From Podarcis gaigeae (Eukaryota): a stretch of DNA of 64,000 nucleotides. The DNA is taken from assembly GCA_964106915.2 (NCBI GenBank), contig OZ066926.1. One strand, given 5' to 3'. A program made the translations under genes and the position numbers. Positions 15,524-64,000 of the stretch are shown in pieces (the first letter of the stretch is position 1; every line of letters starts with the position of its first letter). Below the pieces are notes generated by a model. The model made no database searches and was not told the DNA's origin. It worked only from the letters and a program-made list of their open reading frames with translations.

Positions 15524-20736
<5,213 letters not shown>

Positions 20737-51699: not shown

Positions 51700-54635
51700 A
51701 TGAGAGAGAAGATGGCCACGGAGGAGGGGGCCGAGGCAGACCTGGGGGCTGTGACCCAAGCGTCACTGAGCCTGCAAGGCATTAAAATGGAAGAGCAAGC
51801 ACCAGCAGCCCTCAGAATGGGACAAGCCCTAGAAAAAGCAGGACAGGCTTCTTGTGTCCTTCATGCCAGGAAGCTCTTGCAATGGAAGGTGTCTCCACTG
51901 GTCAAGGAGGAGCCAGATGCAGGAAGGATCCAGCACTGGGAGATCCAAGGCCCAGAAACAGAACATCCCCTTTCTTTTGGATGGGGGAGAACAAGGCCCA
52001 CCGAGGCTGAACCTTGGGATGACATCCTGGCACTTTTCGCTTCCTTTGAGCACATGGCCTACGCCTGCCGGTGGCCGAGGGAAGAGTTGGTGGCCCGGCT
52101 TTTGCCAGCCCTGGGCGGGGAGGCCCAAGAGGCTTACCTCAGTTTGGACACTAGTGACAGAAGGGACTATGGGAAAGTGAAGGCAGCCATCTTGAAGAGG
52201 GAACCCGTGGCGTCGGAGAAGCGGAGGAGGCACTTCCGGCAGTTCCAGTACCAGGAGTCAAGGGGGCCGAGGGACGCTTGCCGGCGGCTCTGGGAGCTCT
52301 GCCGTCGTTGGCTGAGGCCGGAGAGCCGAAGCAAAGAGCAGATCCTGGAGCTGCTGATCCTGGAGCAATTCCTGACCATCTTGCCAGAGGAGGTCCGGAG
52401 CCAAGTTTGGGAGCAAGTCCCAGAAACCTGTGCCCGGGCGGTGAACCTGGCTGAGAATTTTTTGGCAAGGCAGCAGGAGGCTGAGAGGCAGGTACTCCAG
52501 GTGAGAGGATCCTGCAGTTCCTTCTTGATCCCTGGGGTCCCAAGTTGGTCTAACCATGCGGGAAGTTTTCCTTAGGTGCTTATGCGAGGGGAGACAAAGC
52601 ACCTCCCTCCTCCTGATCACCATCTAATAAAATCCTTCTCACGTAAAATGTCTTCATAAAGGCAAAGATGGTCAAAGCTGCTTTATGAGCTGTGAAAATC
52701 TGGTGCACTAAGGCTTGGAATAATATGTTTAATTTGTATAGACTTTAGCTGTATGGAGAACGATGTAAGTGCTTTGCCCAAAGTTAGAAGCAAAGAATGT
52801 CCGTGTCCAAAGACATAAAATCTAAACAGACAGGACACAAAAGGCAGGGAAGAGAATTAGGAGATCAGGAGTGGGGAACCTGCTGCCCCCCAGATGTTGA
52901 TGGACTCTGGCTCCCATCATCCCTGACTACTGGCCATGCCAGCTGGGGCTGATGGGAGCTGGAGTCTAACATTGTCTGGAGGACCACTGGTTCCCCTTTC
53001 TCAGCTTACCCCTTGTGATGATGGTAAAAGTGAAAAATCCTACAGCTTCCTAATGTTTTTAAACCTTCCTGACTGTAAGGAGTCCCAGCTGAGGCTCCGT
53101 GTCATGGACTGGCTGGATACAGAGGAGGAGTGGGAGGCACTAGTTGGGAACCCCCAAGGAAAGAAGGCTCAGAGTCAGGGGACTGGTGTTGGGATGATGA
53201 TGGGAGATCAGAGGGAGAAGAGGAACAGGCTGGGAGGAGGCAGTGTCAGAAGCTGAAGAGGTAACAGGGTTTAGTGAGTGGGGAGAATCTGTGGCAGAGA
53301 GAAGTCTAGAAGCAAAAGCAAGAGAGGAGGGAGGCAGCGATAAAGAAGTCAGGGGGTCTTCCCCTCCTGCTGTGACCAGTTCCCTTCCCCTCAGGTATCC
53401 CAGGACCAGAAGGGATTATGAAGAGAGAGGAGCAGAAACAGGCGTGCCAGCGGAGTCTCAGGTTGCTTGGGAAGGACCCAGAGAGAAGGAGATTTTGGCA
53501 TCTTATGAGTAGGAGCAAAACCTACTCAGAAGAGTTGCTGTGCTCATTAGGCCTGGCTTCCCTGAGCTTATAATTCGTATGATTTATTGCTGGCTGGCAT
53601 CCTGACATTCTGACATCAAATCATGCTGACTTGTGAGAGTCCCCAGTTCTGTCTCAAACCCAGTGAAGTCCTTTGCTCCCCCAAGCTGTTCCAGGGAGTT
53701 TGTGCCAGGATATCGAATGCTCATTCCTACCAGCCCTGTTCCTGCATTGAGCGGGACCTTCCCTGCAATTTCAGGTGTCAGGGTCATTCGAGGACACCCT
53801 CGTGAGTTCCCCAAGGGCAGAGCTGGCTCCGTCAGATACAAGGCAGAGCCTCCTCAGGAAGGCCAAGCAGGCAGGTGGTGGAGGAGATGCCAGCTCTCTG
53901 GGTGAGTAGTTGCTGCATTTTTGAAATTCAAGTTTACATAGGCGTTGCCATCTTCACGGGCGCATAGCTTGTACTGTTGTTTTAACTTAGAGTGTTGAGT
54001 TTAACTTAGAGTATTGTTCTAAGTGTTAAGTAGCATGTGATTGGTGTGCCACCCCCCACAAAACCTAGAACTACCCCTACATTTGCCTCCAGCTCTCCCC
54101 TTGAGCTCTCCCCAGTTCTGTAAAATTAGTGTGCAGCAACCCTGTTCACAGGATTTTGTATGGGGCCATCCATACCAGCTGTTTCTGCCATGTCTTGGAA
54201 ACAGCAGTACTATGTTCCAGTTCATGTGATGTCCCTTATTGGAGTTCCACTTCCTGGTTTTCAGGCCAGGGCTGATATCATTCCTTGTTCTCTTCAGCCA
54301 GTTTTGGCCAAACCACACTGCGTTTCTTTTCTGATGCAGGTTCTTCTGACACAGAGGCAACATGGGACTCACTGGCAGACGAAGGGGGCCGTGGCGAATG
54401 TGGGAAGCGAGACCCTTCTGCAAGAGCAGGTGGGCAGGGTACTAGACTGCTGTTATATACAGGAGACATCCAGATCCTTACAGGGGAGGCTAACGGCTTG
54501 AGAATTATGCAGCACAAAGTTTTACCTTTGTCATGAACTTGCTAGGCAGTCTTAGGCAAAAGCCACTCTCCGTTTCAGATCCTTTCCCCCATGCTCAACA
54601 CAGGCAAAATAATGTTGAGATTCCTGCATTGCGGC

Positions 54636-58070: not shown

Positions 58071-58455
58071 ACTTGGAAGTTGACGGGGTCCATGAGCAGG
58101 TTCTGGACGGGCAGGGACGCTCAGGTCCTCGAGGGTGTCGACGATGGATGTTGTCCATGAGTCCGGCATCCTTGCGGATAAACCAAAGTAGTTTCTTTCC
58201 CTGCAGGCTGATGTAGCCAGAGAGGTGCTACGGTAGGAAGGGAGAAACAGTGTGGGCGGTGGGGTGCGTGGCTAAAAGCCCACAGGAGACGAGAGTAAAG
58301 AGGAGAAGGGTCACAACAGCGGCTTCGCCCCCATGAGTGGGTCCCTGCCCGACGAGGCGGGCTTACCTGGGCACGGCGTTGATGTCCCAGGAAAAGGACG
58401 GGATCTCGGCCCAAACGGGCTGCACGTAGCTCTGGCAGACTCCGCTCATCGCCAT
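58071..58455 (-). pseudogene. alpha-globin-derived pseudogene, copy A
   Basis: Exon 1 58455-58367 MAMSGVCQSYVQPVWAEIPSFSWDINAVP with phase-2 AG|GTAAG. Exon-2 relics in shifting frames: LLATHPTAHT, SGYISLQGKKLLWFIRKDAGLMDNI, VDTLEDLS, LPVQNLLMDPVNFQ. The donor is split by a solo LTR and its remainder (GTGAGT) lies at about 57409-57414. GATAAAA at 58501-58507. Confidence 0.85.
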
Positions 58456-59064
58456 CCTTGCACTTCAACCTCTTCAGCACCGTCTGAGACCGAGGAGCCC
58501 TTTTATCACTGCCAGCCCTACACCCGGACCAGCCAGAAAATGGGAAACCCCATTAAATTAATCAATATGAAATGTTTAATTGGATGGTTTTTATTTTTTT
58601 ATTTTGGATATGACGTGGCAAGATTTGATATGTTATTAATTGAGATGTTATTAATGAAAAATTAATAAAAATTTATTTATGTATTTATTTTTAAAGAAGC
58701 CAATGAGAATCTTTGTGTCCTCTCCTGGTGAGCCTCCAGCCTGGGTCCTGGGCATTGCCGGCTCAAAGGAAGCCCTTCTCAAGAAGCAAAATGGTGTTTC
58801 CTGCCATCTTGGGCCCCTCCAGGCCTGCAGGCTCCCCTGCTATAGAGAGATTCTCCCGTGGAAGGGACACTCCCGGGAGCTGGTGGACTCTCCTTCCTTG
58901 GAAGGTTTTAAGTAGAGGATGGATGGCCGTTTGCCAGGGACCATTTGATAACGGGGATTGGACTAGATGACTCTGAGTGTCCTTCCCAACTCCATTATTT
59001 CCCCGCACCCCCACCCCCTTCAGCCTAAATAGTCTCCAGGAGAGTAGTGAGAGCTAAAAGCAGG

Positions 59065-59070
59065 TTTATT
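59065..59070 (-). terminator. polyadenylation signal of globin-like copy B
   Basis: AATAAA about 75 nt after the ancestral KYR stop. Confidence 0.7.
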
Positions 59071-59201
59071 GGGCGGGGGGGGCGAGGGCGAGGCTGCCAC
59101 GTCCAGGAGGCACTTCTGCGGAGGGTGCGGCTGCTTCTCTGGCCTAGCGGTACTTGGAGGTCAGCATGACGGGGCGGCTGTCGATGGAGACGCTGGCGCT
59201 C

Positions 59202-59720
59202 TTATCTAGGAGCCCGGACGTTGACCGCCATTACCACCTGGATGTCTGGGCTCGGCAGCTGCGGGAAAAGCGAAGGCGGGGAGCGTTAGACGGAGAGGAC
59301 GGAGCGGCGCGAAGGGGCGAAGGAGGGACCCACGTGACGGGAAGAGAGAAAGACTCACCCTGGAGTTGACCGGGTCCGCGAGCAGGTTTTGGGCGGGCAG
59401 GGGGCTCGGGATGCCGAGGGCGCGGGCGACGGCTTTAATGGTGAGGCGGCAGAGTTCATCGAAAATGGACTTCTCTGGGTTCGAACTGACGGGGAGCCCG
59501 CTTCGGGAGGAGAGGGAGAAGAAGGTCAGTTTGCAGGAAAAGAGAGTAAAGAGAGTAAAGAGGAGAAGGGTCGGGCCATGGCCTCGACATCGGGAGAGGG
59601 TCCCTGCCCGACGGGGCGGGCTTACCTGGGCACAGCCCGGGCGCCGATGTCTGCGGAACGGGACGGGATCTCGGCCCAAACGGGCTGCACGTGGCTCTGG
59701 TTGACTCCGCTCAGCGCCAT
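59202..59720 (-). CDS. alpha-globin-derived 3-exon gene, copy B; predicted 97-aa heme-histidine-less mini-globin (could be a pseudogene)
   Basis: Exons 59720-59626 (95 nt, MALSGVNQSHVQPVWAEIPSRSADIGARAVP, Trp at residue 15, phase-2 intron), 59500-59359 (GLPVSSNPEKSIFDELCRLTIKAVARALGIPSPLPAQNLLADPVNSR, phase-0 intron), 59258-59202 (LPSPDIQVVMAVNVRAPR*). The ancestral ending VMLTSKYR* survives 1 nt out of frame to 59144. Globin origin is near certain; expression is unproven. Confidence 0.75.
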
Positions 59721-59764
59721 CCTGCCAGCTCAACCTCTTGGTGCCGTCGGAGCAGGGGCAGCCC

Positions 59765-59771
59765 TTTTATC
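59765..59771 (-). promoter_or_regulatory. GATAAAA TATA-position element of globin-like copy B
   Basis: GGGCGGGCGGTGATAAAAGGGC about 45 nt upstream of the ATG; same element in copies A and C. Confidence 0.65.
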
Positions 59772-60769
59772 ACCGCCCGCCCTGTCTCCCGGGTGGCGTC
59801 TCCCTCGGCCTCTGCCAGGGCGTCCTTGCCTCCCCCGGCCTGGCAAAGATCCGGGACGGGGCGCACGAGCCCTGGCAAGCGAGCATCCTCCTCGCAATTC
59901 CCGCTGCCTGCTGTCAGGCGGACACCATCGAGCATCTTCGCTGGACGCTCCCTGGGCGATGGTGACTCGGTAGTCCTGACACACACCCCCACACACACCC
60001 CGCGAGGTCGGCCAGTCAGTCTTCTTCCCCCATGGCTGCGCACTGCAGAGGGGCACGAGGGGAGGGGAGGAATGGCGCCTCCCAGAAAGCCGTGTACGGA
60101 GGTTCTCTCTCAGGTCCTCGCCTGCGGAGATGGGGGTGCAAGCTAGGACCCAAATCGAAGCAAATGGGTCGCTCTAACCCCGAAGCTAAAAGAAGAGGAG
60201 CGTGTGTGACCTTGCAGGCCATTTCTCCCCTTGTCCACGAAAGGCTGAGCATGGAAGCCAGGCAAGAAGACACCTGCAGAAGAGTCTCTTGGGAGGGCAG
60301 CTGAGCTGTGGGGGTAATGGGGGGCTGGTGCTCTATGCAGGCTTGCCATACTGGTGGAGGGAAGGAGAAGGAGAAGGCATGAGCACTTTGGGGCATCACA
60401 ATTTTGCATGACCCCCCGCCCAAAAAAACCAGGATGTCCCAGACTGTTGAGGGGTATGTGCCAGCCACATACTGACCCTCTAGGTGAGTTTTGCAGACTA
60501 CCAATTGGGAGCCGCTGATCTACAGTATTCCAAGTGTTTTTGCACCACAGGTTTGTAGAATGTCATTCTGGTAGCCAGAGTCTTGTTTTGAAATGCATTT
60601 TCAAGTGACCCCCACCCAGCATGGAATGGGCCTTTTTCACAGCTTCAGAACACAGGGTTGGCCTTTTCATCCAGCTCTCCACTACCATCTCAAGGTCTCG
60701 ATCCAGGTTGGCCACTGCCAGTTCAGACCATGAATATATATGTGTGGGGTTAAGATGTGCATTTTTTAA

Positions 60770-60975
60770 ATCACAGAATGGTAGAGTTGGAAGGGATCCC
60801 GAGGCTCATCGAGCCCAACCCCCAGCAATGAAGGAATCTCAGCTGAAGTATCCCAGACAGATGGCCAGCCAACCTCTGCTTTAAAATCTCCAAGGAAGGC
60901 GAGTCCACCACCTTCAGAGGGAGTCTGTCCCACCGTGAAACAGCTCTTGCTCTCAGAAAGTTATTCCAAGTGTTC
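60770..60975 (-). mobile_element. CR1 LINE 3' end fragment
   Basis: Minus-strand ORF NFLRARAVSRWDRLPLKVVDSPSLEILKQRL and tail TTCCAACTCTACCATTCTGTGATT. Confidence 0.8.
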
Positions 60976-61423
60976 ACAGCGCCCCCCCCAAGACAGCATT
61001 GCATGCGGCCTCAGCAACCTGAGCGCCCTGCTGGAGGAGGAGATGACCTTCTGAGGGAGTCTCTCTCCCTCCCCGTAGGGGGGCTCTGGAGGGGGCCTCC
61101 CTCCTTTCTTCCTTTGCACCCGCTCAATCCTCCCAGCCTAAAGTTCCCCACCTCTGCTTCTCCTGCAGGTGCTGGGTAATATCATCATGGTGATGGCCAC
61201 CTCAGAACCCAATTCCTAGGGACCGAGGTCCATTTGGGGTCCCCAATAAAGTACTGGAGGAGGCTGGGCCTTCCTTGTTCTCTTCAGCCAGTTTTGGCCA
61301 AACCACAGTGTGTTTCTTTTCTGATGCAGTTACAGATAGGTAGCCGTGTTGGTCTGCCATAGTCAAAACAAAATAAAAAAATTCCTTCCAGTAGCACCTT
61401 AAAGACCAACTAAGTTGTTCTAG

Positions 61424-61461
61424 GTATGAGCTTTCGTGTGCATGCACACTTCTTCAGATAC
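61424..61461 (-). ncRNA. minimal hammerhead ribozyme motif (inverted copy)
   Basis: Exact reverse complement of the 61469-61506 motif. Confidence 0.65.
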
Positions 61462-61468
61462 ACAGTGT

Positions 61469-61506
61469 GTATCTGAAGAAGTGTGCATGCACACGAAAGC
61501 TCATAC
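61469..61506 (+). ncRNA. minimal hammerhead ribozyme motif (Penelope-associated)
   Basis: GTAT CTGAAGA A GTGTG CATG CACAC GAAA GC TC ATAC: stem I, CUGANGA core, stem II, GAAA, palindromic AGCU helix III, CUC cleavage triplet. Confidence 0.65.
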
Positions 61507-62109
61507 CTAGAACAACTAGCTCATACCTAGAACAACTTAGTTGGTCTTTAAGGTGCTACTGGAAGGAATTTTTTGTTTTGTTTTTTTCTGATGCAGTTTC
61601 TTCTGACACAGAGGGGACATGGGACTCCCTGGCAGACGTGGGAAGCGAGACCCTTCTGCGGGGGCAGGTGGGCAGGGTACTAGACTGCTCTGATATACCA
61701 GAGACATCGAAATCCTTACAGGGGAAGCTGACACCCTCAGAATTATGCAGCACAAAGGTTTTACTTTTGTCATGAACTTGCTAGGCAGTCTCAGGCAAGC
61801 CACTCTCCATTTCAGCTCCTTTCTCCCATGTTCAACATGAGCAAAATAATGTTCGCATTCCTGCATTGTGAGGGTTGGACTGGATGCTCTTATTCAGTTA
61901 GTTAGCCTCTTTTGTCCACCATTTTGTCTCTATTGCAGTGGTTCTATGAGGTAGCAAGATGGCTGCCATTGCTACCTCCTATTTCCATAATAATTAATTT
62001 TTGTACCTCTTTGAACTGAATGGGTTGTTCCAGCTACTCTTGGTGACTTACTAAAGAATTACTGGGCGGATGCCATGACTGTTCAAGTGTTATAATAGTG
62101 TTTTGAATG

Positions 62110-62333
62110 TACAGCCGTACCTTGGTTTTCAAACAGCTTATTCCTTGAACGTTTTCGCTCCCAAACGTTGCAAATCTGGCAATGACTGTTCCGGTTTGCA
62201 AACTATTTTTGGAAGCTGAACGTCAGACGGGGCTTCCTGAAGCCAATTGGAAGCTGTGCTTTGGCTTCCAAAGGTTTTGGAAGTCAAACGGATTCTGGAA
62301 TGGATTCCATTCGACTTCCAAGATACAACTGTG
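62110..62333. mobile_element. Tc1/mariner MITE, second subfamily
   Basis: TACAGCCGTACCTTGG...CCAAGATACAACTGTG. Confidence 0.7.
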
Positions 62334-62972
62334 CAGAGCCGGTGTGGTGAAGTTGGTGTTATGTGGTTTTAAGACATTTGGAAATAATAGAGAAAATTCA
62401 GGAACAAAAATATAAGACTATCTCCAGACCAGCCAGAAAATGGGAAGCCCCATTCAATCAATCAATATGAAATGTTTAATTGTATTGTTTTTATTTTTTG
62501 TTTTTATTTTGGATATGACATGGCAATATTTCATATGTTCTTAATTGAGATGTTATTAATGAAAAATTAATAAAAAATATTTATTTATTTATTTATATTA
62601 AAAGAGGCCAATGAGAATCCTTGTCTCCTCTCCTGATGAGCCTCCAGCCTGGGTCCTGGGCATTGCGGCTCAAAGGAAGCCCTTCTCAAGAAGCAAAATG
62701 GTGTTTTCTGCCATCCTGGGCCCCTCCAGGCCTGCAGGCTCCCCTGCTATAGAGAGATTCCCCCGTGGAAGGGACACTCCCGGGAGCTGGTGGACTCTCC
62801 TTCCTTAGAAGGTTTTAAGCAGAGGATGGGTGGCCGCCTGCCAGGGACGATTTGATTCCGGGGATTGGACTAGATGACTCTGAGTGTCCTTCCCAACTCC
62901 ATTATTTCCCCGCACCCCCCACCCCGTTCAGCCTAAATAGACTCCGGGAGAGCAGTGAGACCTTAAAGCAGG

Positions 62973-62978
62973 TTTATT
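62973..62978 (-). terminator. polyadenylation signal of globin-like copy C
   Basis: AATAAA at the homologous position. Confidence 0.7.
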
Positions 62979-63066
62979 GGGGGGGGGGGCGAGGGCGAGG
63001 CTGCCACGTCCAGGCGGCACTTCTGCGGAGGGCGCCGGCTGCTTCTTTCGCCTAGCGTTATATGGA

Positions 63067-63592
63067 TCACAGCCCATTGGCGATGCAAGCAGCCGAGCAG
63101 AAGATGCCCATTTCCAGCTGGATGTCTGGGAACGGCACCTGCAGGAGGGGCGAAGGCGGGGAGCGTTAGAGAGAACAGAGAGACGCGAAGGGGCGAAGGA
63201 GGGACCCACGTCTGGAGCCCCCGCCCGACGGGGAGGGAGAGAGACTCACCCCGGAGTTGACGGGGTCCGCGAGCAGAAGGTTCTGGGCGGGCAGGGTGGT
63301 CAGGTTGCTGGGATCCCAGGTGAAGCTGCAGATTATCTCGAAGAGGTACTTGGTCATGTCCTCCGCTAAGGGGCGGGTTCTACGGGAGGAGGGGGAGAAG
63401 AAGGTCAGCTTGCGGGAAAGGAGAGAGTAAAGAGGAGAAGGGTCGGGCCATGGCCTCGCCATCGGGAGAGGGTCCCTGCCCCACGGGGCGGGCTTACCTG
63501 GGCACAGCCTGGGCGCGGATGTCTGCGGAACGGGACGGGATCTCGGCCCAAACGGGCTGCACGTGGCTCTGGCTGACTCCGCTCAGCGCCAT
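63067..63592 (-). CDS. alpha-globin-derived 3-exon gene, copy C; predicted 98-aa heme-histidine-less mini-globin (could be a pseudogene)
   Basis: Exons 63592-63498 (95 nt, MALSGVSQSHVQPVWAEIPSRSADIRAQAVP), 63379-63250 (TRPLAEDMTKYLFEIICSFTWDPSNLTTLPAQNLLLADPVNSG), 63138-63067 (VPFPDIQLEMGIFCSAACIANGL*); all GT-AG with frame preserved. Confidence 0.75.
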
Positions 63593-63636
63593 CCTGCCAG
63601 CTCAACCTCTTGGTGCCGTCGGAGCAGGGGCAGCCC

Positions 63637-63643
63637 TTTTATC
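63637..63643 (-). promoter_or_regulatory. GATAAAA TATA-position element of globin-like copy C
   Basis: GGGCGGGCGATGATAAAAGGGC about 45 nt upstream of the ATG. Confidence 0.65.
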
Positions 63644-64000
63644 ATCGCCCGCCCTGTCTCCCGGGTGGCGTCTCCCTCGGCCTCTGCCAGCGCGTCCCTG
63701 CCTCCCCCGGCCTCGGCAAAGATCCGGGACGGGGCGCACGAGCCCTGGGAAGTGAGCATCCTCCTCGCAATTGCCGCTGCCTGCTGCCAGACGGACACCG
63801 TCGAGCATCTTCGCTGGACGCTCCCTGGGCGATGATGACTCGCTAGTCCAGACACGCCCCCCCCCCCCCCCAGGTCGGCCAGTCAGTCTTCTTCCCCCAT
63901 TGCTGTGCACGGCAGAGGGGCACGAGGGGAAGGGAGGAATGGGGCCTCCCAGAAAGCCGTGTGCGGAGGTTCTCTCTCAGGTCCTCGCCTGCGGGTGTGG

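Follow-up and report, generated by a model that had tools for sequence, protein, structure and literature searches.

The 64,000-nucleotide stretch of Podarcis gaigeae DNA analysed here (contig OZ066926.1; hereafter the window) carries on its minus strand two small three-exon genes, B and C, and a broken copy, A, that belong to what is apparently a real and undescribed Podarcis gene family born from haemoglobin. An original prediction, made from the letters of the window alone, had taken all three for alpha-globin-derived genes that lost the heme-binding apparatus and may have been co-opted and not simply left to decay. The strongest evidence is the frame-aware hypervariability of exon 2 and of the exon-3 start, which had no part in the main finding of that prediction. 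On the whole, we consider a function under diversifying selection probable for this family. A more specific reading, in which the old heme-pocket helix has become the hypervariable specificity segment of a new, heme-free recognition family of the Podarcis lineage, combined with exon-3 variants in a germline or anti-parasite conflict, is put forward tentatively.

Frame-aware change in exons 2 and 3

Eleven complete three-exon copies were compared: six from P. muralis, three from P. lilfordi, and B and C. Their identity is 96% in exon 1 and 95% in the introns, 72% in exon 2 and 74% in exon 3; for B versus C it is 93-95% in flanks, intron 1 and the untranslated region (UTR), 97% in exon 1 and 55% in the 5′ part of exon 2. 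The tree length over the first 48 nucleotides (nt) of exon 2 is 3.46 substitutions per site, versus 0.28 and 0.32 for the introns. These 16 codons, which would correspond to the old E helix, evolve roughly 11-fold faster than the introns, and their insertions and deletions (indels) are in-frame only. Exon 2 comes in lengths of 130, 142 and 151 nt, all in frame, and the intron indels include some of 1, 4, 7 and 8 nt. By codon position, the differences in the hypervariable segment run 0.56, 0.44 and 0.37, with the third position least changed; third positions are spared, since the GC (guanine plus cytosine) content of the segment is 0.37, 0.34 and 0.84 at the three positions. The proportions of non-synonymous (pN) and synonymous (pS) differences there are 0.51 and 0.28, as against 0.05 in the introns, these pairwise values among copies not being independent of one another.

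In codon models, the ratio of non-synonymous to synonymous rates (dN/dS, omega) for the hypervariable 16 codons is 4.5 and 3.8 (p<0.001) with equal or F1x4 codon frequencies. For codons 1-13 of exon 3, where only non-synonymous changes are seen, omega reaches its upper bound whichever of the three frequency models is used (p<=0.003). Hence dN exceeds dS at the exon-3 start whatever the model, and in exon 2 under the equal and F1x4 models only. The last 19 codons of exon 2 give omega values of 0.15-0.79, with constraint significant under F3x4 only (0.15-0.25).

An internal control is informative here. In the first 48 nt of exon 2, B matches the P. lilfordi copy at the equivalent position at 23 sites (52% differ), with 88-96% identity in its other parts; for the dead copy A and its counterpart, 46 of the 48 sites match (4% differ; Fisher p 1e-7 against the B pair). 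Some pairs of copies have nearly the same exon 2 with different exon-3 types, and others the reverse, and such mosaics show recombination between copies. A cysteine recurs in the hypervariable helix of exon 2 (residues 47-50 of the family) in 9 of the 11 copies.

Descent from alpha-globin and loss of the heme apparatus

Judged by database matches, the alpha-globin descent of the family is not a matter of chance. A profile of nine database members found only alpha chains among the 60 best Protein Data Bank (PDB) matches listed, with a best single-chain E of 6e-6, and the protein of a P. lilfordi retrocopy, described below, matches alphaA chains, ranked first, at E 1.5e-8. The Atlas puts a family member nearest to globins. 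A fold search in the Atlas, made with a low-confidence model, reached template-modelling (TM) scores only below 0.4. Pfam Globin (PF00042), the check that had been proposed, gave no match at E<=1 with single exons or with the nine full-length database members, and a PDB search with exon 2 of B alone gave none either. The parent is most likely alphaA, because alphaA chains rank first for the retrocopy and because reads of an intact gene with the motif DLHAQK align to family exon 2 and intron 2 at at least 85% identity; the LHAQK motif and the LTSKYR end are ones that we take to be alphaA features. AlphaD was considered as parent and dropped after the DLHAQK reads and the alphaA ranking of the retrocopy.

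A proline stands opposite His F8 in every copy, in A and in the retrocopy, and the loss of this residue therefore predates the duplications, just as the original prediction had it. A, B and C all read LP(A/V)QNLL there. Exon 2 of B and C is without histidine, as was claimed, and His10 is the sole histidine of each spliced product; the distal His E7 was accordingly not found in exon 2 of B and C, its position in B/C-type copies being placed by back-counting only, and in copy A the distal-His motif reads QGKK. In the A-type copy of P. lilfordi, the C helix and Phe CD1 can still be read within the intron; in B/C-type copies, they are intronic or deleted. The A-type copy has the ancestral acceptor, after it these two readable features and, 53 nt on, a second AG; in B/C-type copies, the first AG is destroyed and the second is used. 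The canonical globin exon 2 is 205 nt long, and the longest B/C-type exon 2, at 151 nt, equals this minus 54. The intron-1 acceptor of B and C is thus a new site within the old exon 2 and not the ancestral B12.2 acceptor, and by back-counting the new exon 2 would start with the end of the old CD region and the E helix. Of the standard globin intron positions that the original prediction had invoked, the B12.2 donor and the G7.0 intron stand and the intron-1 acceptor does not. From the loss of its heme contacts, the family would be heme-free.

Transcripts and a germline retrocopy

Twelve probable RNA runs, from three studies of one organism, a relative, contain parts of B; they were compared to C. 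In one run presumed to be RNA (X3), a contig matches as far as the 63498 donor; after 75 letters of unrelated sequence, the match returns within the 3′ portion of exon 2 and runs into the first bases of exon 3, where the contig ends. Both introns are missing from this contig, whose 130-nt exon 2 bears a different variable segment. A second X3 contig joins exon 2 to 63137, a third has a poly(A) end at 62965, and in run X23 three raw reads span the exon 2/3 junction on the expected strand. These spliced, polyadenylated RNAs come from family members of a relative; none is a transcript of B or C itself.

The retrocopy lies in P. lilfordi on another chromosome (L003:9805-10652). It is intronless, joined at the positions of the family's donor 1 and intron 2, and has a 14-nt target-site duplication, a short A tail and an open 98-codon frame ending LTSKYR. 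Its leader begins 129 nt upstream of the GATAAAA box. For such a retrocopy to be inherited, an older member must have been transcribed in the germline or the early embryo, and from a start that lay upstream of the erythroid TATA box. The upstream region is CpG-rich (GC 0.67; CpG observed/expected 0.66-0.68). The retrocopy adjoins a GRAM/RabGAP-TBC gene, and its 3′ UTR holds an insert resembling a short interspersed element. A location on the Z chromosome was considered and dropped, its contig measuring 51.1 Mb and the Z 50.7 Mb.

Relatives in other Podarcis genomes

With exon 2 of B as query, homology search led to P. muralis LOC144325310, whose protein led in turn to other proteins labelled “uncharacterized”, each of them from either P. 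muralis or P. lilfordi. Their loci adjoin the same zinc-finger genes, 92-96% identical to the window, which makes the window the matching locus of another Podarcis genome. The NCBI model of LOC144325310 uses splice sites identical to those chosen for B and C. All 11 new-acceptor three-exon copies in the three genomes have an open frame, and family proteins range from 93 to 108 amino acids. Decay in relatives, which would have spoken for ordinary pseudogenes, is not what is seen: in the nine further copies, from P. muralis and P. lilfordi, frames and splice sites are intact. Neither homology searches nor a profile search of 1.84 billion proteins found members outside the annotation of these two species, though the annotation of other lacertids may lack such genes. 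One candidate (P0011) was rejected as a chance bacterial match.

Exon 3 is of two types, short in-frame (C and seven others) and long frameshifted (B and two P. lilfordi copies), so the frameshift of B is shared and not private to it. Two NCBI models, isoforms X1 and X2 of P. muralis LOC144325095 (P0010, P0012), have a long upstream frame with intron 1 retained, which implies that transcription begins about 250 nt before the start codon. In a P. lilfordi model (P0007), a B-type exon 2 is linked to the A-type exon 2 over a distance of about 5 kb, which may be due to read-through splicing or to an annotation artefact.

Anatomy of B, C and A

All features of the three copies are on the minus strand. 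In C, the globin-type TATA box GATAAAA is at 63637-63643; an RNA contig of the relative extends to 63652, so that some transcript starts upstream of it. Coding exon 1 (63498-63592, ATG at 63592) is 95 nt long, covers the old A-B helices and has no signal peptide, and its donor is the one used in the spliced contig. Intron 1 (63380-63497) ends in 30 nt that are the intronised remnant of the old exon 2 (C helix/CD1). The 130-nt exon 2 (63250-63379) holds the hypervariable segment at 63332-63379 and, at the F8 codon, Pro at 63289-63291. Intron 2 (63139-63249; G7.0, phase 0) is followed by a coding exon 3 of the short in-frame type with a mildly hydrophobic end (63067-63138), and by AATAAA at 62973-62978.

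In B, the box lies at 59765-59771 and the 95-nt coding exon 1 at 59626-59720 (ATG at 59720). Intron 1 (59501-59625) ends in a weak GAAG acceptor, with an alternative in-frame acceptor at 59485; the 142-nt exon 2 (59359-59500) has its hypervariable segment at 59453-59500 and the F8 proline at 59395-59397. After intron 2 (59259-59358) comes a coding exon 3 of the long frameshifted type (59202-59258), then the ancestral LTSKYR-stop, out of frame in the 3′ UTR (59144-59164), and AATAAA at 59065-59070. In both genes, GATAAAA stands at -51, exon 1 ends AG|GTAAG with Trp15, acceptors are AG, the exon-2 donor is GTGAGT in phase 0, and the branch points CTGAC/CTAAC are present. The frames are open, and splicing yields 97 amino acids for B and 98 for C. 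These particulars had all been read correctly in the original prediction, the shared LP(A/V)QNLL motif and the displaced LTSKYR of B among them. Its picture of three genes of alpha-globin architecture holds for B and C, but not for A.

Copy A (58074-58507) retains GATAAAA (58501-58507), an 89-nt exon 1 (58367-58455) and a 154-nt exon 2 (58074-58227) that is frameshifted and carries a stop; a second donor and exon 3 are missing. It is a dead relic, a pseudogene fragment. The duplication unit around B spans 58524-60127, and its counterpart around C is 62424-63994.

Genomic setting

In the window, the neighbours of B and C are SCAN and C2H2 zinc-finger genes and a sulfotransferase gene; the usual globin flank is not there. 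Exons of the cytosolic sulfotransferase lie at 17045-18895 on the minus strand. The B-C spacer carries, at 61581-61868, an 82-97% copy of part of the neighbouring SCAN-zinc-finger gene region (54281-54631), which means that the duplication unit contains zinc-finger-gene DNA. At 61057-61193 on the plus strand is an inverted, degraded piece of family intron 2 and exon-3 start that is more globin-like (VLGNIIMVMA). Its P. lilfordi counterpart abuts the A-type fragment, which suggests an old family copy split by inversion. A 220-nt inverted repeat at 61365-61584 is a hairpin resembling a miniature inverted-repeat transposable element, with related ends elsewhere in the window. The order and number of copies vary among the three Podarcis genomes, and copies occur in both orientations (L001:11568-12713, L002:5528-6158). 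The P. lilfordi copy in inverted orientation is broken, and in P. muralis one copy consists of a fragment of exon 1.

Discussion

The favoured explanation is as follows. In the Podarcis lineage, a copy of an alphaA-globin gene would have left the globin cluster and been inserted into one of SCAN/C2H2 zinc-finger genes. It would then have lost His F8, and its intron-1 acceptor would have shifted 54 nt into exon 2, removing the C helix and Phe CD1; exon 3 would have been shortened, and tandem multiplication would have followed. The resulting copies would be live genes that code for protein and evolve under diversifying selection. The products are most likely small, intracellular, heme-free binding proteins, with variable recognition surfaces provided by the old E helix at the start of exon 2 and by the start of exon 3, and a constant part around the old F8 (LPAQNLLADPVNS), the old FG corner. 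Recombination in intron 2 would mix exon-2 and exon-3 variants, while duplication and gene conversion would homogenise the non-coding parts. The intracellular location is suggested by exon 1, which lacks a signal-peptide core (best 10-residue hydropathy 0.33, judged by hydropathy only). Both the variable exon-2 segment and exon 3 are amphipathic and, in a low-confidence model, predicted to form helices; the mildly hydrophobic end of the short-type exon 3 could serve as a membrane anchor. Variable segments of this pattern usually reflect an arms race; the likeliest driver would be one in germ cells or against an intracellular parasite, with a CpG-rich promoter from which transcription may start upstream of the erythroid TATA box. 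Such a conflict or germline role seems possible, though somewhat short of an even chance, and translation, binding role, tissue and opponent are all matters that we infer.

The co-option proposed by the original prediction has gained support from the relatives and from the spliced, polyadenylated RNA, whose absence would have argued for pseudogenes; that the function is heme-independent is still something that we infer. The kept gene signals, offered then as evidence of function, are indeed present, but they prove little alone, because exon 1 and the introns are about as alike as the neutral flanks.

A number of results weigh against a functional, diversifying family. Expression is low in both raw-read runs, and several contigs of run X1 are unspliced. 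The source of the retrocopy is an older form with the ancestral acceptor, which dates the germline transcription to the past. The hypervariable segment is short and near saturation, its synonymous distance is five times that of the introns, and with F3x4 frequencies its omega is 0.85-1.1 and not significant. Exon 1 shows no significant constraint and is indistinguishable from neutral sequence. The absence of stops is in itself weak evidence (P 0.03-0.29 under neutral simulation), and the equivalence of B to its P. lilfordi partner rests on position and exon-3 type. Finally, the AlphaFold model (predicted local distance difference test 54.7, predicted TM score 0.18) has two helices only and is unreliable.

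Within the functional reading, one variant makes the product an erythroid accessory or defence protein working from the globin promoter, either a globin-binding, chaperone-like factor or a decoy against blood parasites. GATAAAA, CACCC and GC boxes are retained, the constant segment would be the old FG corner, which is a subunit-contact region of haemoglobin, and lacertids are hosts to red-cell parasites. However, no CCAAT was found within 400 nt of B or C, and both transcripts and retrocopy reach upstream of the TATA box. Moreover, the unspliced reads of intact alpha-globin in X23 (21 and 11) outnumber the family reads (depth 2-4), which places the family far below globin level in that run. 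We regard this variant as unlikely. The retrocopy, the upstream start and the low signal beside globin pre-mRNA in X23 are the reasons to favour a germ-cell or non-erythroid defence role over one in red cells.

In one alternative, the copies would be transcribed pseudogenes. Recent duplication and gene conversion would keep signals and flanks alike, and local mutation or segment swapping would scramble part of exon 2 with no selection on a protein. This agrees with the loss of all heme contacts, the broken copies among intact ones, the low RNA levels, the neutral-looking exon 1, the F3x4 omega near 1, and synonymous sites in the segment that are also fast, with a transition bias down to about 1. 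What it does not predict is that the fast zone begins at the splice acceptor, spares third positions, admits in-frame indels only and is absent from dead copy A, or that the exon-3 start has changed at non-synonymous sites only. For these reasons, we hold it to be quite improbable. Still within the functional reading, the products could be secreted signals or toxin-like peptides (a pheromone or gland secretion), as in other reptile families whose exons outrun their introns. Such a family would recall viperid three-finger toxin genes with their constant first exon and introns and switched exon segments (PMC2474615), but this variant is very unlikely, exon 1 having no hydrophobic core and thus no signal peptide, and the proteins no conserved disulfide frame.

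A functional family under diversifying selection would make alpha-globin, a textbook constrained gene, the seed of a young family with an apparently different job. Several stages of the process survive: the A-type relic retains the C helix, the retrocopy preserves the old acceptor and C-terminus, and two types of exon 3 came later. Such intermediates open the origin of a new protein from an older one to direct testing, and the pace of change inside a single genus suggests that these much-studied lizards are the scene of a strong selective conflict. Annotation calls the genes “uncharacterized” and globin hidden Markov models miss them, so similar families elsewhere would be missed too. That no such squamate family has been described was already the impression of the original prediction, and a literature search, with most subscription journals outside its reach, found no paper on the family, its LOC numbers or heme-less globin co-option; two Podarcis genome papers do not mention globins.

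Among known systems, the N-terminal domain of RsbR is a heme-less globin-fold protein in which heme binding was lost and the fold reused for protein contacts. It is bacterial and keeps the globin fold, whereas the Podarcis family has much of the fold deleted. Globin pseudogenes, such as python alphaA and those of crocodilian alphaD and beta (PMC5786229), share the loss of heme-binding residues, and copy A and some relatives are of that kind; the intact copies differ in keeping their frames in three genomes, in being spliced and in their frame-aware rate excess. Sauropsid alpha clusters are described as stable, with rare pseudogenes; no family like the present one was reported in that survey, which mentioned no lacertid (PMC5786229). 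Squamate alphaA-globin (HBA) itself has the same three exons, 95-nt exon 1, B12.2 donor, G7.0 intron, Trp A12, DPVN motif, LTSKYR end, and TATA and poly(A) signals, and the family introns are at least 85% like those of the intact alpha-globin in X23. Unlike it, the family has Pro at F8, an intronised CD1 region and no distal His, is 35-50 residues shorter, and lies outside the globin cluster as a multi-copy, fast-evolving set. In mode of change, there are parallels in accelerated-exon families, such as venom PLA2, conopeptides and MHC exon 2. The viperid three-finger toxins, with their accelerated exons (ASSET), likewise have near-identical introns and first exon, divergent exon segments, a kept frame and recombined exons (PMC2474615). 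The Podarcis family differs from them in lacking a signal peptide and a disulfide scaffold and in its globin origin; the likeness is thus one of mode of evolution, not of ancestry, and no indication of a toxin.

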